Origin: Trichoplax adhaerens
Taxonomy: Eukaryota; Animalia; Placozoa
Assembly: GCF_000150275.1 (NCBI RefSeq)
Contig: NW_002060945.1
Coordinates: 4,513,397-4,577,396 of the forward strand
Direction: 5' to 3'
Length of the DNA stretch: 64,000 nt
This document shows, in pieces, positions 1,978 through 64,000 of the stretch. The position numbers were made by a program, and so were the translations under genes. Numbering within the stretch: position 1 is the first letter of the stretch; each line of letters starts with the position of its first letter. Under the pieces are notes generated by a model. That model made no database searches. It saw only the letters and a program-made list of their open reading frames with translations, and had not been told where the DNA came from.

Positions 1978-3765
1978 AAAATAGCGTGTATAAAATGCTT
2001 GATTACTTTGCACTTTAGTAGCAAGCCTCCCGAGAATCCTTTATCACTGTTTTGCAAATTACTAGTTTCTGTTAGCTTAGATGAGATTTTGAAATAAGTT
2101 TAGATTGATAAGAAGGGCTTGTATTTACTCGTTATGTGGCCAAAAATATTGAAAAGTATATACATCCACATTGTATCAGTTATAGGATTCATTGTACAGA
2201 AATTCTCTAAGCATCGGAATCACTGGTTCACTTCATTGTTATTTCAAAAGTAATGAATGAACTTTATTAACAGTAAAAATATTCGACACAAGATCTAAGT
2301 ATTTAGGTTTATAGCTCGTCTTTTTCAATTAGATCAAAAAGTTGATTATCTGCAATGCAATTATCACGTAATACTGTATTAGTATATTTGGTTGAAAATG
2401 CAAGTTGCGATGATATATTTACCATATATTCTTAAAAATATTAATTATTATCGTCTTTATCTGTATGATATGCAATAGATATTATCAGTTGTCAAGACGA
2501 TAAAAGACAACATATATAGCCACATAAGCTGTATATGGTATAAACAAAAATGTATGTTTATAAATATAGCCTATATATATATACAATGCACAGCAATTTA
2601 TTTAGTGTCTAGAACACAAGACAGTATATCGTATACGCCGTATTTTGTCTATAATGAACATTTCTACTTTGAAGTACAGTAAGTATCACCATGACATTAT
2701 ATCTTAACTTTCGTTAAAGTTCAATTTATATAGAATTTATATTTATTATTCCGACTACTATTCACATCACGTGCTGTCTTACCTGGTAGAATTATGAACA
2801 ATAATGCGGAAATAAAATCGTTTTTAAAGCTGCAAAATAGTTTATCTTGTTTGCTTACGGATAGTTTTAAAATATAACCGATTGTTTAAGCTAATCTAAG
2901 TCAATGCTAAATATATAATGGATGGCAAATTTCATTTACTCATCTGGATAATTATTTACTATTTAAAAATGCTGCTACGTTATAAGTTGAGCTTTTATTG
3001 AGTTTCAGTTAATTTGTACAACTTATTCATGGCTACGCTGTATAATCTTTAATCTTTATTATAATTAGTTCACATCGAGAACAATTTAAGCCAACTTTTG
3101 TACTTAGAAGCAGGTAGTAGAGCATTTTAAGGCTAATAGTAGCGTCACAGAATGATACCGCTCCAAGTGATTTAAATATGTAATTTAAAAGTTACATAAA
3201 AGTCGAATTTAGAGTTGTCTTAACCAAATGCACATACTTAGTAAAAATTTCCTAAAATCAATAAAGCTTCACGTTATTTATACGGTACATACAACATAAT
3301 TAAAGTATAATAAGTAATGGTAACGAGTCTTGCGTAGCAGGAAAGGATTTTAAAGATGTAACTACTATTTTAAAACCGTTACAGATAGCTAGATCGCAGA
3401 ACTGATCCGATACAAAAATTCCAGTGATCCACTTTTGGCCATTTTTGCGTCGTCCTTATGATTATAATTACTTTAGCGCTATTACAGTGTAAGAATTTTA
3501 TATTATAAAACAAAGTTACCTTCATCTCAAGTAATATACAAAATACTAGATTTTATGCGAACTTGATAGGCACTGCACTTTATAGCATTATATTAACAAC
3601 GGTTGAAAAATCAAGTTTACTCCTGTACAAATGAATGCAGCATAATATATATACTTTGTTGTAAATAAGTGTAAATAGTTGATAAAAAAAATAACGAATC
3701 AGAGATTTGACGTTGTAATAATTTGCTATGATCATACAGCGTTTAGTCCAACTGAGAGTCAACAA

Positions 3766-5808
3766 TTATATCATATTTAAGTGTTGGAGATGGCCCTAAG
3801 AAGTCATAGTCAGTTACCAAAAGAAATGATAAAAGAAAGAGCGTTAATATTGCTATTAATATTTTTGAATATTGGTATTGCATGCATAACACCGGTAAAT
3901 CGATCGTTACATCTTTGTTCCAACTAAAAACTATACTATCACTATGGCAAATAATTCTATATGGATATAACATCAATCTTTACTTACCCCAGTGCCACAC
4001 AAACAAAGAAAGCAATAAGAGCCGCGCCGAGATCCAGTCCAATCAGGTGCAGGATTTGTCGGATTGGCCAGATGGTAATTACTTCTAGTAGTAGCTATAT
4101 GTTGCACATGATTTTCATCGCTTTGACGCTGGCACAGTCGCTTCTAAAAGCATAATAATCCAGTAAAATAATATATTGGTATTACTTTAATTCAAATACT
4201 GTACGTAGTCATTCAACATAGGATAAAATATCGTCAATTAGCAATATGAAAACGTAGTTTATCGAGATACGCGTAAATACAATTGGATTATGATTATTAA
4301 ATCAAATAATAACCAGCCCTAGTCTTGGTGCTTAATAGTTATAGCTATATAACGTGATGTACAGCACATCTTATGAATATCAAACTGTCGAATCCAATTA
4401 TTCTATACTGATTTATAACTGGTATTGATTCAACTATCAGTAGATACTATTGTGTCTTTCTATATCTGCGTAGCTGGACTCCAAAAGCTGTTTTGACTTT
4501 CAGCAACAACAGGGCATTTGTACTTAATCTCAATATACTATAGTATTCTTTTAGAACAATGATACAGAAAATCTATATGATATGGCGTCATTTTGATTCT
4601 TATAATTTTTATGTGCTAATAACTTTTAATGTACGGATATTACAGTATCGTGATAGTAGATATATTATATATAGAGATATATGGTTTGATTCAAAAACAT
4701 CAAGCGTGCTTTTCGTTGAATTTACATAAATATGACGCCACTAAAATATTGATGAAAAATCATGTTAAAATGGCGTATGAGGTAAAAATAGGTAGAAACA
4801 TAATGAACCCTTACAGTTATAGCCAGTAGGTGTAAGAATTCTATTAGGATGACATCGACACTGTTTAAAAATTCTAAAATCGAATAATTTCTGGATTGCA
4901 TAATGACTCATGAGCTACCAATATCCTAGTATACAGTGACTGTGTAGTAGTAGCGTCAGTAACGACTGTGTAAACAAAATGACAGAAGTAAAGGAACTAT
5001 CAATATTAGATAGTCTTAAGGGATAAAGTGCATAGAGTACTATCGTTCTAAATAGTTAATTATTGAATAAGTCTAATAGGACTAGTTTTGCTGCTATTGT
5101 GAGTGATACCCTTTAGTAAAATAGTCTTATTTCTTGATCTTGATATCAATATAGCCAATAACTACAGTACACTTGTCTATTTGCTGTACAGCCATGCCAA
5201 CGGTACAATGGCGCGTTGTATACAGTACAGTAATTATGCATTTATCATTGATTCATCAAGTTCAAGCTATTCAATCACCTTTGGCAATCTCATTTTATAA
5301 TGGTCAATAAAATACTGACTATCAAGTATAGTTAATGGGCTAAGTAAATAGGATTCTACCTCATGGTGTTATTAATGCTACTGATGTGTGTAATTAGTGA
5401 ATTAATCGGATGTCAGTAAAGTGGGAGATTAACTCGTCCATGGCTGTTTCATCGGTCAATACTAATGTGTTAAATAATGCTTTAATCGTCTATCAACAAT
5501 TCCTACACATCCAGTTAGCCACTAATATCAAAAGATAAGTAGTAAAATGGATTGGATCGAGAAAAAAAAAGCTAGGATGCGCCTGCATCTCAAGTTGGAG
5601 TGCTGCAGCTGTTTACCATGAATTCAATATTCACATGTGTAGACAATCATTTCCCATCATAGAAAAGTAGCGTATCATTATCATTTGGTGATGGTAAATA
5701 CCATATCTATCAATCTATCTATATTTACATAGTACATACGCTATTTTGCAGAGGAATGTGTTCATTTATTTCAAATGATCTCTTATGTCTGCGAAGATTT
5801 TCGACCAT
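3766..5808 (-). CDS. Small (84 aa) three-exon C10orf143-like protein with a C-terminal CxxC-x5-GHxxH motif
   Basis: Exons 5808-5740 (69 nt, donor GTATGT), 4143-3988 (156 nt, TTTTAG acceptor, GTAAGT donor) and 3795-3766 (CTTAG acceptor, TAA stop), all phase 0. Product MVENLRRHKRSFEINEHIPLQNS/KRLCQRQSDENHVQHIATTRSNYHLANPTNPAPDWTGSRRGSYCFLCLCGTG/GHLQHLNMI. Resembles recalled human C10orf143 (KRVCRR...CPRCIAGESGHFSH). Confidence 0.78.
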
Positions 5809-5809
5809 C

Positions 5810-7114
5810 TTTTTCCAGGAAATGCTACTTGGCGCTCAAAGGCAGCAACGCTTTGTTTTGGAGCTTATCACTTACACTGCAGTCGGCAGGTCTCACGCCG
5901 CGTCGCATCAATCAATGGATTGTGCCCCCTGTGGACACGCGGACATACAGACAGAAGACTACAGTCCATGCCGTACAGTGTACAGTCTACAGTACAGTCT
6001 ATTCGTACTGTACAGTACTATACACTGTACTGTACACCCTAATAATGGTGCGGAGGTCCGAGAATCAGGAACTTGAGGCTTCACAGTCCTTTTTTCAATG
6101 TAATTAGTAGTACAGTACTGGACATGGGTAATTCTAAATTTTATTTTATTTGAACTACTTCTTTTTTTTAAGTTGGGTAACAAGTTACTCAAAGCTACTG
6201 CCACCCGGTGAATGGAAGCCGCTGTTAACTAGTCCTACAGCATACTCGTAAACTATGACATGGACTACTGTACTTCACTGTACTAGAGTACGACCATGAC
6301 TATGACTACTGTAGAGTACTGTACTGTACTTGCAACATTAATACTGTACTGGATCTCACGACATGGAGCCGTGACAGACATTTTTGGTTGAGTACAGTAG
6401 TCGCTGACCTGACAGGGTGAGTCTCAGCCCGACGTATTGATTGACGTCCAAGGTCATGAGATGATATCGATAATGATGGTTGCCAGTCAAGAGACTTGAC
6501 GATGCGTAAACGCGCTCTTTTCACACTGCAGCACTATACTGAATGTATAAGTATTGCAACTTTTACAAGACACACATGATGTATGTATGTGTCCCTTTCT
6601 TTTTAGTAGTCTCTGCTTAGTGTACACTGTGTACAGTGTACATTATTATAATGTCACTGACAGTCTGCCATTATTACTGATGTACTTTTACCTTTCATCT
6701 TAACAACCGCTATGTACACACACTGGACAGACGGCCTATCCTATCCTGATGGCACATTTGCCAATGAATTACAGTACTGTACTGTACAGGAAAACTTTTC
6801 TCAAGACTTGATGTACTGTACAGTACTGTACGTCACATTGCTGACGACTGACCAGTGACCACCAACCAAGACTCAGACGCCTCTACCGTGTACAGTACAC
6901 AGTATAGCAGTGTACACTGTACACTGTAGACTAGGACCGCCTGCAGTTATCATAACTTGGTACTAAAATAGGGTAACGCACAATACGAGTTCTTTCAACG
7001 AGTCATTCCTTTATATCAAAATTGTATAAAACCTATCAAAAAGCATCTAATGTTCATTTTTACTTTACAGTACTAACAGACAGCCAAGGAGGTTATCAAA
7101 TCAACCAAATCACG
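5810..7114. promoter_or_regulatory. Putative bidirectional promoter / 5' UTR region between the C10orf143-like gene (-) and the neurabin-like gene (+)
   Basis: Head-to-head arrangement, locally higher GC and CpG content, CAGTA/TACTG tracts, a candidate + strand donor (GTGAGT near 6417) and a candidate non-coding exon 7071-7114 (TTACAG acceptor, GTAATA donor). Confidence 0.5.
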
Positions 7115-7812: not shown

Positions 7813-10800
7813 ATGACATCTTTTCGTAATTTAGCAATGTCAGTCGGCGAAGACCAAGATCAAGAAGAAGAAAAGAGCATTTTCCATCATGGTACCGTCA
7901 ACAATTTGGCCAAAATGTTTGGTCAAAGTACATCTAGTCAAAGTTATAATTCTCGACAACGTAAAGTGCCAAACGTTGGTGGGGAACAATCTCCAATGAA
8001 CAGAAATGTAAAATCGAAGATCAATGCTACAAATTCCAATACTTATTCAAATCCGCCATTAAACCATTCTAATTCTAATGATGATGAAAACATCACCCGA
8101 GAAAACTTTAGACCATCTACTCGAGTTAAAAATGGAACTCAACTGTTGACCAAGAATAATCCTGATAGCGTAACCGACAACGTAGCAGGACGCAAAACAA
8201 ACACTAATGTTAATGTAAAAGGGAAGAACAACCGTTTACCTACTAAAGTAATCAATCACTTATCCAATCAAGATAATTCTCCAAGTGTTTTTAAAGTCAA
8301 GTTAAAAAAAGTCGGTATTGAGAAATTATTACAAGAAGACGAAGAGAAAAGGAAAGCAAGTGTTCAAGATGAACAAATGAATCAATCGTCCTTCGATACT
8401 GTGAATGCCAAACTGAACTACCAAATACCGCAACGAACAAAAATGGATGATGATGATGACCATAATAGATATGTGATAGCAAGTAAACAATCACCAAATC
8501 AACTTGACCATGATATGAATTACAATTCAATCCGGACTAATCCAATTACGGATAATACCGATTCAAACATTGAGAATAAAATGATAGAAGAGAATAACAC
8601 TATAAGTGAGGATAAAGAAAGTGCAAAAGATAATTCTCAGATAACCTCATTGCCTCCTTTGGAAAAGAAAACAGCAAAGCCTGATAATGTTGATATCACT
8701 TCAGGTCTATCAGTTTACACTAAAGGCAAGTATGTACCTCCTCCTTCAGTCAAAGAAAATTATGACCATAATCAATCCGTTAAACCCAACAGTAACGATT
8801 TTACCCCCTCGCTTGGTAAAAAATCCAACACTAGCGCCAGGTTAGCCTACAATTTTGCTAAAACTGGGAAAAAGAAAACTTCAAAAGACAATACACCAAT
8901 TCTTCCAAAGTCGCAAAATTCAGCCTATCAATTTAGTAAAACTGCATCCAGTCCTAAAAATCAACCAACCAGAGATGATAACCAAGACGAAATAAGCTAT
9001 AGCACTTCTAATATATCATCATCTAAATCTGTGACTGACGCGAATAATTTTGGCCATTTTATCAAAAAGAAGTCGAAAAGCGTGGATAAAAATCCACGCA
9101 TAGTAGAACAAATTAATTCCAATTCAATAAATGAGCAAAACAGTGACCAACAGTTACCGGCATCTGGTAAATCGATTCTTAAATTATCATCTAATTCCGA
9201 TAAAAAGGTTCCTTCTAGTGTCAAATTTTCCAATGATCAACCCCAAATTAATTTTACGCATTCTGCTGACGACTACGAACGAGTCATTGATATCGATGCT
9301 GCATTAAACGTAGCGCAAAATGAAATTGAAAAAAGCCTACGTAATATGGATTTAGTTCCCGTAGAATTGGCTAAATGTAAGTATTTTAAAATATTCATAG
9401 TGCAAGTCTGTTACCCTGTAAAAATTAATTAATTATGGATAGTACAAGTCAATAAATTCGACTTCGCTTCCCAAATTTAAAGAGGTCCTCTTTTTACTTT
9501 TTCTAATTTAGATTATAATTATCGATCTAGTCTATACATTCGAGTTATAGGCATTAATTAAATTATTATTCTTGGTAAAAAATAGGAATTTTAAAATACG
9601 TATAAACAATAAATTTTATTATTTACGGGTATATAGCTATTGTAATTAATTAGCGTTGTGGTTTAACTCAAAAGGTAGAGTGCGGCATACCCAATCTTGA
9701 TAATATGTGAAGTATATTATAGTTAAATTTTTTATTTTATAAAATACAGTAGTTAAAAATCAATCACGTTATTTCACAAATAGAGATCGACCGAAATATA
9801 TCTTCTGTTTTACACAATGATAATTAATCTATGAATCAATCATTAATCCTACGTGTGCGTATAAAAGTGTATATCTCTCTATTCTTTAGAGTGCAATAGC
9901 ATTGTTATTCATATTCGATCTTTGACATAAATTATATTATCTTATCGATCTATTGTTAGACGATAAACCTTTAGGTGTAACAATCAAGAAAGTATGGGTT
10001 GGAGAAAATGGCGAAGGAGACGATTTATTATCTGTTTATATAGACTCAATTGTGCCTGGTGGAATCGCCGATCGAAGCAAAAAGTATAGTAATCTTTTTT
10101 AAGAGTTTAATTTTAAAACGCAACTATTATTCTGCTAAATGTAACTAATACAGTGGCCCGATTGATAAAATCTTAAATCTACTTATACAGTATAAACATT
10201 GTACTGTGCTGATAGGCGCATTTTTTTTATACGTACGAGACTAGGGACCGCTCAAGAAATATTTATAATCCCCATGTTATATAGGGAGTGTAACCGGGAG
10301 AAAAATTTCTTGAGAGGTCCCTGACAAAATATAGGATTGGAAATTTCTATGATACGCGTATATCATCTATAGTCATACAGTTAGCATAAATATATCCATT
10401 GAGAATGACGTCAGTTAGATTTTTATGCTGCTATACAATTATTTGTTATGTTAATTTAAATTTCCGCCAGTTACTTCCATCTACAAAGAATCATTTAATA
10501 CCTGAATTTTTTTTATACAGAAATTCGATCTGATTTTATCCATAGTAGTCCTTTCTATATCTTGGCTTTAATGTTAGCAAGAGAGCGTAGTCAAATAACA
10601 GTCACTGTATCATGCGTGAAAATGATGTATACTTCACTACTGCTATTATTTTTACCATCAATAGACATACAACGCAAGCGTAATCATTTATATCCTGTAA
10701 TATTTGTTTAAGATCAACTAGGCTTAGGGAAAACGAACTATTAAGTTCTATTCAATTCTACAATAATTGATGAATAGATATCATTTTTAATTATTAAAAG

Positions 10801-18927: not shown

Positions 18928-19700
18928 AAGGTCACGCCATCCGAACATCCATATACACTCAGGTCTAGACCCAATCATGAAGATCTTTTTACACAGTGTA
19001 CAGTACAGTACAGTACAGTACAGTACAGTACAGTGTGAACCAGTTCGAATCAGAGTACTTTAAGGTATCCTAAAATCACGAGTGTGAATCAAAATGTAAT
19101 AAGAATTATACGAATATAAAGCTGAATAACTTAGTGACGAGAGTCGAACTGTGAAAGGCCACGCCATCCGAACGTCCATATGCAGTAAGACCCAACCATG
19201 AAGATCTTTGTACACAGTGTACAGTACTAACACTCTGACAGTACAGTACCGTACTGTGCACTGTAGCGTTTTAGACAGTAACTGTACTGTACTGTACAGT
19301 ACAGTATCACGAATCTGCGATAGAATGGGACGAAATGATCGAATGAGTTGAACTGTGAAAGGTCACGCCATCCGAACATCCATATGGGACCCAAACATGA
19401 AGATCTTTATACAGTACACAGTGTACAGTACTGTGCTACTGTACTGTACTGTACACTGTAGCATTTTGGACAGAAACTGTATCACACGACTCTGCGATAC
19501 GCAGACGAAATGATCAAATCAGTTGAAGGTGAAAGGTCACGCCATCCGAACATCCATATAGGACCGTGAGTACACTCAGTACAGTACTGTAGGACTCTGC
19601 TACAGTGTATAGTACTGTGTTACTGTACTGTACTGTACACTGTAGCATTTGGGACAGGAACTGTATCACGACTCTGAGATAGAATGGGACGAAATGATCA
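18928..19700. repeat. Four-copy tandem repeat (about 175-230 bp units) with conserved core AAGGTCACGCCATCCGAACATCCATAT and embedded CAGTA/TACTG microsatellite
   Basis: Core copies begin at about 18928, 19155, 19359 and 19533. Shared sub-motifs CATGAAGATCTTT and GATAGAATGGGACGAAATGATC recur. Confidence 0.9.
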
Positions 19701-47231: not shown

Positions 47232-48021
47232 GGTGGCCGTCTTATTTCATTATTTTCACCTTCGATCAGCTGGCAATCCACTCCTCTGCCTCCTTGTACT
47301 CGGTACTGTACACTGTACAGTGTACAGTACTGTACAGTATGCAGTATACTGTACAGTACAGTACAGTACTGTAGTACAGAATCGGTAGATGGAGATCTTA
47401 CTACAGTGTACAGTACAGACTAAGTACAGTACAATGTACATTCCAAATACTGTTCGGACAGATGGACTTTTCTTTACCAAATGAGGACGCAAATATCGAA
47501 AAATGGCTTGCTTAGTATGGATCTTTCGTGTTTGTTTTCTAAATCACTGGTACTAAATTTAGATACCATTTACAATCTTATGTAACTATTTCCGAGCAGA
47601 ACTTAATAATGGATAATAGTAGTACTGTCATAAAGAAGTGTTTGAAACAATATTTTAACGAGATGAAGCGGAATAGGTCTGTCCGTCCAAGAGTGATCAG
47701 TCCAGGTCTTCTTCTAGTTTCCATGGTACAGTGTACTGAACTGTCGCTTCATAACACTGGACTGTATTGACTGAACACATTAATGCCGCCTCAACCAGTG
47801 TTATGCGACAACAACGTACAGTACTGTGCACTGTGCAGCAGTCCTGATACTTTACACTGTACAGTACAGTACTGTACTGTACTATACGGTGGACAGTACT
47901 GTACTGTCAGGGTTACAGAAATGTTATTTTAAAATACTCGCAAGTTTGAATTTACTACAATTATAAATTATATTATATATTGTACAGTATAGGCAGTCTA
48001 GAAATTAGCTAAATTACCAAT
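47232..48021. promoter_or_regulatory. 790-bp bidirectional promoter region VPS8 (-) / ZNF330 (+) with CAGTA/TACTG tracts near both ends
   Basis: Divergent ATGs at 47231 and 48022; microsatellite blocks at about 47295-47440 and 47815-47910. Confidence 0.6.
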
Positions 48022-63499: not shown

Positions 63500-64000
63500 A
63501 TTAATAAATACAGACAGTGCTGTACTGTAGAGCGAATAGCAATCATGTGGAAGTTTATTTTACCGGTGCGCTTCTACTGCACTGTACTGTACACTACAGT
63601 ACTCTCAGTTAGTGCTTGATGCGGAACGCTACAGTGCGCTGCTACAGTAAAAATAATTGTACTGTATACTATGCACTGTACTAAAAAGAAAAGAGATACT
63701 GTACTGTACAGTACCAAAGAAACCCTACAGTACTATACTGTACAGTACTGTACACTATACACTGTACGGTACTTTGCACTACTGTACTGTACTGTATGCG
63801 CTACTGTACAGAGTACAGTATACTAAAAAGAAAAGAGATGCTGTACAGTGTACAGTACCAAAGAAACCGTACTATACTGTACACTGTACACTGTATAATG
63901 TATTGTACTGTACTGTACTGTACTGTACTAAATCAACTTAGCAGCATACTGTACCGTACTGTATTAGCAACTACTGTACTGTACAGTACGATACAGTTCT
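63500..64000. repeat. CAGTA/TACTG microsatellite tract containing an about 142-bp tandem duplication
   Basis: Dense TACTG/CAGTA runs; ACTAAAAAGAAAAGAGAT(A/G)CTGTAC..ACAGTACCAAAGAAACC occurs at about 63680 and 63822. Confidence 0.85.

Follow-up and report, generated by a model that had tools for sequence, protein, structure and literature searches.

The window analysed here, a stretch of 64,000 nucleotides of the Trichoplax adhaerens genome (contig NW_002060945.1, positions 4,513,397 to 4,577,396), contains a small gene on its minus strand that lies between two genes on the plus strand. The small gene spans 2,043 nt, and its three coding exons together hold 84 codons and a stop (Table 1). On one side, the 3' end of a tensin-like gene converges on it; the two stop codons are 1.8 kb apart, and the tensin-like gene carries PTP, PTEN-C2, SH2 and PTB domains in the annotation of Trichoplax sp. 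H2. On the other side, a neurabin/spinophilin-like gene diverges from it, with 2.0 kb separating the two start codons.

Table 1. Features in and around the three-exon microgene, in window coordinates.
Feature	Position	Strand	Description
Tensin-like gene, 3' end	1-1978	plus	convergent with the microgene
Exon 3 (coding)	3795-3766	minus	9 codons, G-H-L-Q-H-L-N-M-I, and TAA; supplies the His pair
Intron 2	3796..3987	minus	192 nt; GTAAGT..TAG; phase 0; 28.6% GC
Exon 2 (coding)	4143-3988	minus	52 codons; starts K-R-L-C-Q-R, ends C-F-L-C-L-C-G-T-G; 47.4% GC
Intron 1	4144..5739	minus	1,596 nt; GT..AG; phase 0; 31.6% GC
Exon 1 (coding)	5808-5740	minus	23 codons; basic patch R-R-H-K-R; ends N-S; ATG 5808-5806
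Upstream region	5809..6930	no strand	GC-rich; GTACAGTAC-type pentamer-phased motif cluster; likely promoter region (predicted)
Neurabin/spinophilin-like gene	7813-9432 and onward	plus	divergent from the microgene; ATG at 7813
GTACAGTAC clusters	6005-6898, 18998-19638, 47303-47904, 63584-63989		four tight clusters of the motif

All junctions of the gene fall in phase 0 and use GT/AG splice sites. The start codon is flanked by A at -3 and G at +4, and its reading frame has a TGA 30 nt farther upstream. Exon 1 ends at the donor AGC/GTATGT; exon 2 runs from the acceptor ttttAG/AAG to the donor GGG/GTAAGT; and exon 3 follows the acceptor cttAG/GGC, upstream of which lies a branch-like site, TAACTGAC. 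With the three exons joined, we counted codons and stops, determined the GC content at each codon position and compared the product with TrispH2_001235, a database protein described below. Retention of intron 2 leads to a stop after four codons, and only splicing therefore gives the protein its G-H-x-x-H end. The mechanical list of open reading frames for the window contains no minus-strand frame of at least 50 amino acids over exon 2, and the gene is therefore invisible in that list. An earlier reading of this DNA, made from the letters alone (the sequence-only reading), had proposed just this arrangement: three minus-strand exons joined in phase 0 through consensus splice sites, a His pair that arises only through the 30-nt last exon and a gene absent from the track of open reading frames. 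All three points hold.

Is such a model more than a product of chance? Short multi-exon reading frames assemble easily in AT-rich sequence, and the window as a whole is only ~32% GC. The model could then be spurious, either a chance reading frame or a set of exons belonging to a non-coding transcript. Against this, exon 2 stands out as a sharp GC island: it forms the sole 150-nt peak (0.474) between positions 3400 and 5900, where the introns lie at 0.29-0.32. Its sequence occurs in one copy in the T. adhaerens genome. The good Kozak context of the start codon, the in-frame stop upstream of it and the donors GTATGT and GTAAGT also speak against a chance assembly. There are 92 AG sites within 2 kb downstream of the second donor, and the window has 6,995 on its two strands together. 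Just one of the 6,995, the exon 3 acceptor, is followed by codons for G-H-x-x-H. Finally, the spliced product rebuilds, over both of its junctions, motifs that are conserved in a vertebrate protein, C10orf143. Since both of the shared blocks straddle predicted junctions (N-S/K-R and G/G-H), the splicing model gains independent support from them.

A second genome bears on the same question. A word search with exon 2 matched one protein, the 84-aa hypothetical protein TrispH2_001235 of Trichoplax sp. H2 (GCA_003344405.1, contig NOWV01000009.1), to which the exon 2 translation is 98% identical; a word search with the full-length H2 protein found no protein other than itself. TrispH2_001235 belongs to another strain or haplotype and bears no functional name. 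Otherwise it has the same length, the same three-exon span (2,044 nt for the gene, compared with 2,043 nt here), the same neighbours and the same sequence as the predicted microprotein, except for A55T. This substitution, at residue 55 in the variable middle encoded by exon 2 (given as window position ~3920), is the only coding difference between the T. adhaerens (H1) gene and that of H2. The neighbours of TrispH2_001235 are a divergent 1,072-aa PDZ protein and a convergent tensin-like PTP/SH2/PTB protein, as in the window. Over 13.8 kb around the microgene, the window is 99.3% identical to the H2 contig (59 mismatches, 15 gaps), and at that level of similarity comparing H1 with H2 lacks the power to reveal constraint.

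The H2 model was produced by evidence-based annotation: MAKER was supplied with Trinity and Cufflinks transcripts together with Augustus and GeneMark (PMC6057997). No T. adhaerens H1 protein appeared in the TrispH2_001235 cluster in word searches with exon 2 and with the full-length protein. MAKER defaults presumably imply that overlapping evidence lies behind the TrispH2_001235 model. For the view that the gene is spurious, the absence of the microprotein from the H1 protein set counts in its favor, as do a protein with neither a Pfam domain nor a confident fold and a sole H1/H2 coding difference that is non-synonymous; the same false model would simply recur in H2 because the genomes are 99% identical. 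Set beside the evidence-based H2 model, the GC island, the splice sites and the rebuilt motifs, this view appears very improbable to us, and we hold with high confidence that the three-exon microgene of Trichoplax is real. It had been described as hidden and easily missed. That is true of the H1 protein set; in H2 the model was already there, so the gene was overlooked in one annotation and is not new. No functional study turned up in the literature under the H2 locus tag or the mouse gene name.

The neighbouring neurabin-like gene does lie head to head with the microgene: H2 has a divergent PDZ protein at this place, and in the window the first exon of the neighbour ends in a match to the PP1-binding region found in spinophilin and neurabin-1 (PDB 3EGH/3HVQ, E = 8e-5). 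There, V-K-F replaces the canonical R-V-x-F-type K-I-H-F. That first exon runs to ~540 codons and is N/S-rich and of low complexity. Pfam searches of the open reading frames of the neighbour's exons returned nothing.

The 200 nt upstream of the microgene's ATG have a GC content of 0.505, and between the two start codons, at 5950-6930, lies a dense cluster of the GTACAGTAC-type motif. GTACAGTAC is an ACAGT/ACTGT motif phased at 5 bp that occurs 62 times in the window, where 0.36 occurrences are expected, and its copies gather in four tight clusters that coincide with local GC maxima. These maxima are probably the 5' ends of genes. A similar motif has been reported at the anchors of placozoan promoter hubs and at the ends of Mutator transposons (PMC12221973). 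The sequence-only reading had the microgene sharing a promoter region with the neurabin-like gene, and a shared, putative promoter is plausible. About 150 nt separate the ATG of the microgene from the near end of the cluster, and ~900 nt separate the other end from the ATG of the neurabin-like gene; going by these distances, the cluster may act for the microgene no less than for its neighbour.

What is the encoded protein? In database searches, the database protein TrispH2_001235 served as the full-length query and the exons of the window were searched singly. Pfam returned nothing at E <= 10 for exon 1, exon 2 or TrispH2_001235, and a PDB sequence search found no relative. A phmmer search with TrispH2_001235 against 1.84 billion representative proteins detected no member of the C10orf143 family at E <= 0.001; its output consisted of TrispH2_001235 itself and three long repeat proteins. 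In the latter, one weak match is repeated 5-10 times with the cysteines left unaligned. We rejected them as chance matches because their score comes from tandem repeats and not from aligned cysteines. The ESM Atlas entry for the TrispH2_001235 sequence has a pLDDT of 0.32 and no credible neighbours, and a single-sequence AF2 model of the protein is also unconfident (pLDDT 36).

The proposed relative, C10orf143, is a 108-aa coding sequence found in what was formerly the long non-coding RNA LINC00959 and is broadly expressed in human and mouse (PMC6886504). The human gene has four coding exons and is conserved to Xenopus, with a possible orthologue in salmon (PMC6886504 supplementary table). Its protein sequence is given in supplement file 3, and an alignment of the human, mouse (9430038I01Rik) and Xenopus (OCT69938) proteins appears in Fig. 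S4B of the same paper (PMC6886504). The motifs that the sequence-only reading gave for human C10orf143 agree with the sequence in supplement file 3. We compared these proteins with that of Trichoplax by eye; the letters of Fig. S4B were read by machine, and single letters may be wrong.

Two separate blocks are shared. The first is a K-R-x-C-R/Q block, ~24-33 residues from the N-terminus: K-R-V-C-R-R at residues 24-29 of the human protein corresponds to K-R-L-C-Q-R at residues 24-29 in Trichoplax, the mouse has K-R-A-C-R-R, and N-S-K-R-T-C-R-G in Xenopus corresponds to N-S-K-R-L-C in Trichoplax. His35 is common to human and Trichoplax. In all four proteins a basic cluster precedes the K-R by 13-18 residues (R-R-H-K-R at 6-10 in Trichoplax, R-x-R-Q-R-R at 8-13 in human, R-K-R-H in Xenopus). 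The second block is the tail C-x2-C-(I/L)-x-G-x2-G-H-x2-H, which ends 3-4 residues before the stop in human, mouse, Xenopus and Trichoplax; in the last it runs from C67 to H80 and four residues follow. G-H-I-N-H-L in Xenopus and G-H-L-Q-H-L in Trichoplax are conservative at all positions. The residues shared with Trichoplax are those that are invariant in the human, mouse and Xenopus alignment, and they lie at matching offsets from both termini. By eye, the size also agrees, with a family range of roughly 85-115 aa and an N-terminal basic cluster set beside 84 aa in Trichoplax, and all of these proteins are small, have no known domain and are uncharacterised in function.

There are differences as well. 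The human gene has four coding exons and that of Trichoplax three. The middle region varies among all four proteins; that of the vertebrates has 24 more residues and does not allow an alignment. Ahead of the first Cys of the tail, the vertebrate proteins have Q-P, and they have G-E-S-G where Trichoplax has G-T-G-G. An extra cysteine, Cys72, is present in Trichoplax. The two genes do not share synteny, and no search E-value links the Trichoplax protein to the family. Human C10orf143 lies near EBF3 and GLRX3 and is not known to neighbour a neurabin or a tensin.

These differences leave room for another reading, in which the gene is real and expressed but belongs to the Trichoplax lineage and is unrelated to C10orf143, the shared motifs being convergent or coincidental. 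It has in its favor the lack of synteny, a middle of 40 to 60 residues with no clear similarity and the failure of phmmer and word searches to recover any C10orf143-like protein. How often would such motifs arise by chance? In 2,000,000 shuffles of TrispH2_001235, the frequency of K-R-x-C-x-R was 7.5e-4 and that of C..C..G..GH..H 2.5e-6, and no shuffle contained both, a joint chance below 5e-7 before any position is required; because the patterns were picked after the match had been seen, these rates are to be read as orders of magnitude and not as P-values. Given these rates, and with each block at an identical offset from its terminus, chance explains the match poorly. Convergence would also have to produce two separate blocks that match vertebrate-invariant residues at the same N- and C-terminal offsets, and in both blocks the Xenopus sequence resembles that of Trichoplax more than the human one does, as true homology would lead one to expect. 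We consider an unrelated gene improbable.

Our main reading is homology. Motifs and positions are shared as described, and the claim rests on them and not on a search E-value: the search of 1.84 billion proteins by phmmer recovered nothing real in its support. With fairly good confidence, we take the Trichoplax protein to be a homologue of C10orf143, and on its motifs the gene is classed here as a putative placozoan member of this known but uncharacterised family. Taking the parts together, the locus is likely to be a genuine three-exon gene whose product, a basic and mostly disordered microprotein of 84 residues, is the placozoan homologue of vertebrate C10orf143. It is probably a real member of this microprotein family and broadly expressed.

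The conserved core suggests how the protein might work. It comprises two basic clusters, an invariant Cys within a basic block and, at the very C-terminus, a glycine-rich Cys2-His2 tail. The basic clusters are 10-13 residues apart and resemble a bipartite nuclear localisation signal; they would provide nuclear targeting or a surface that binds nucleic acid. In the tail, C67, C70, H77 and H80 would together coordinate a single metal ion in tetrahedral geometry, zinc being the most likely, within a short knuckle. Cys27, the invariant cysteine in K-R-x-C-x-R, could be a further or alternative ligand, perhaps closing the chain into a loop, and the variable middle region would be a linker. The protein would then be small, otherwise disordered and basic, with a nuclear role exerted on nucleic acid or a partner protein. 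A housekeeping role is suggested by the adjoining cluster of a placozoan promoter motif and by the broad expression of mammalian C10orf143. We infer both the nuclear localisation signal and the Cys/His zinc site from the pattern of the sequence.

If the homology is correct, what does it change? C10orf143 is a 'dark' human microprotein whose coding status was recognised only through PhyloCSF. In 2019 it had been followed as far as Xenopus, with a possible orthologue in fish (PMC6886504). A placozoan homologue would place its origin at the base of animals instead of in tetrapods or fish. We lean towards a pre-bilaterian C10orf143, in which C27, C67, C70, H77, H80 and the bipartite basic N-terminus would have been kept since the common ancestor of placozoans and bilaterians. 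If true, this would imply an unrecognised, essential and metal-dependent nuclear function of C10orf143. The family would shrink to a minimal core of basic patch, K-R-x-C-x-R and C-terminal Cys2-His2 tail, and this core names the residues to mutate and the properties to assay: metal binding and nuclear localisation. The finding also shows that the original T. adhaerens protein set lacks conserved microgenes with 30-nt exons, such as this one.

The metal site itself invites a different interpretation. The protein could be a C10orf143 homologue that does not bind zinc, its cysteines forming a redox-active CxxC, contributing with the histidines to Fe-S or copper ligands, or serving as a site of lipid modification. 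The spacing C-x2-C-x6-H-x2-H fits no curated zinc-finger family, and the additional invariant Cys27 is surplus to a zinc site of four ligands. On the other hand, CxxC and HxxH pairs within 14 residues, together with conserved glycines, are most typical of a structural zinc knuckle, and neither a signal peptide nor a transmembrane segment is present to point to a secreted disulphide protein. We judge a role without zinc to be unlikely. To zinc binding by C67, C70, H77 and H80, as predicted from the arrangement of these residues, we give about even credence.

How does this candidate site compare with those already known? The sequence-only reading called it 'C2H2-liganded', a term that follows from the pattern of Cys and His. 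Pfam gives no match, and the spacing differs from that of both established types. The classical C2H2 finger has C-x2-4-C-x12-H-x3-5-H, and the CCHC knuckle C-x2-C-x4-H-x4-C, whereas Trichoplax has C-x2-C-x6-H-x2-H. The resemblance to the CCHC zinc knuckle (PF00098) lies in a C-G-x-x-G-H core, which in Trichoplax occupies residues 72-77 (C72-G-T-G-G-H77) with basic residues adjoining it; the corresponding core of the retroviral-type knuckle is C-x2-C-G-x2-G-H.
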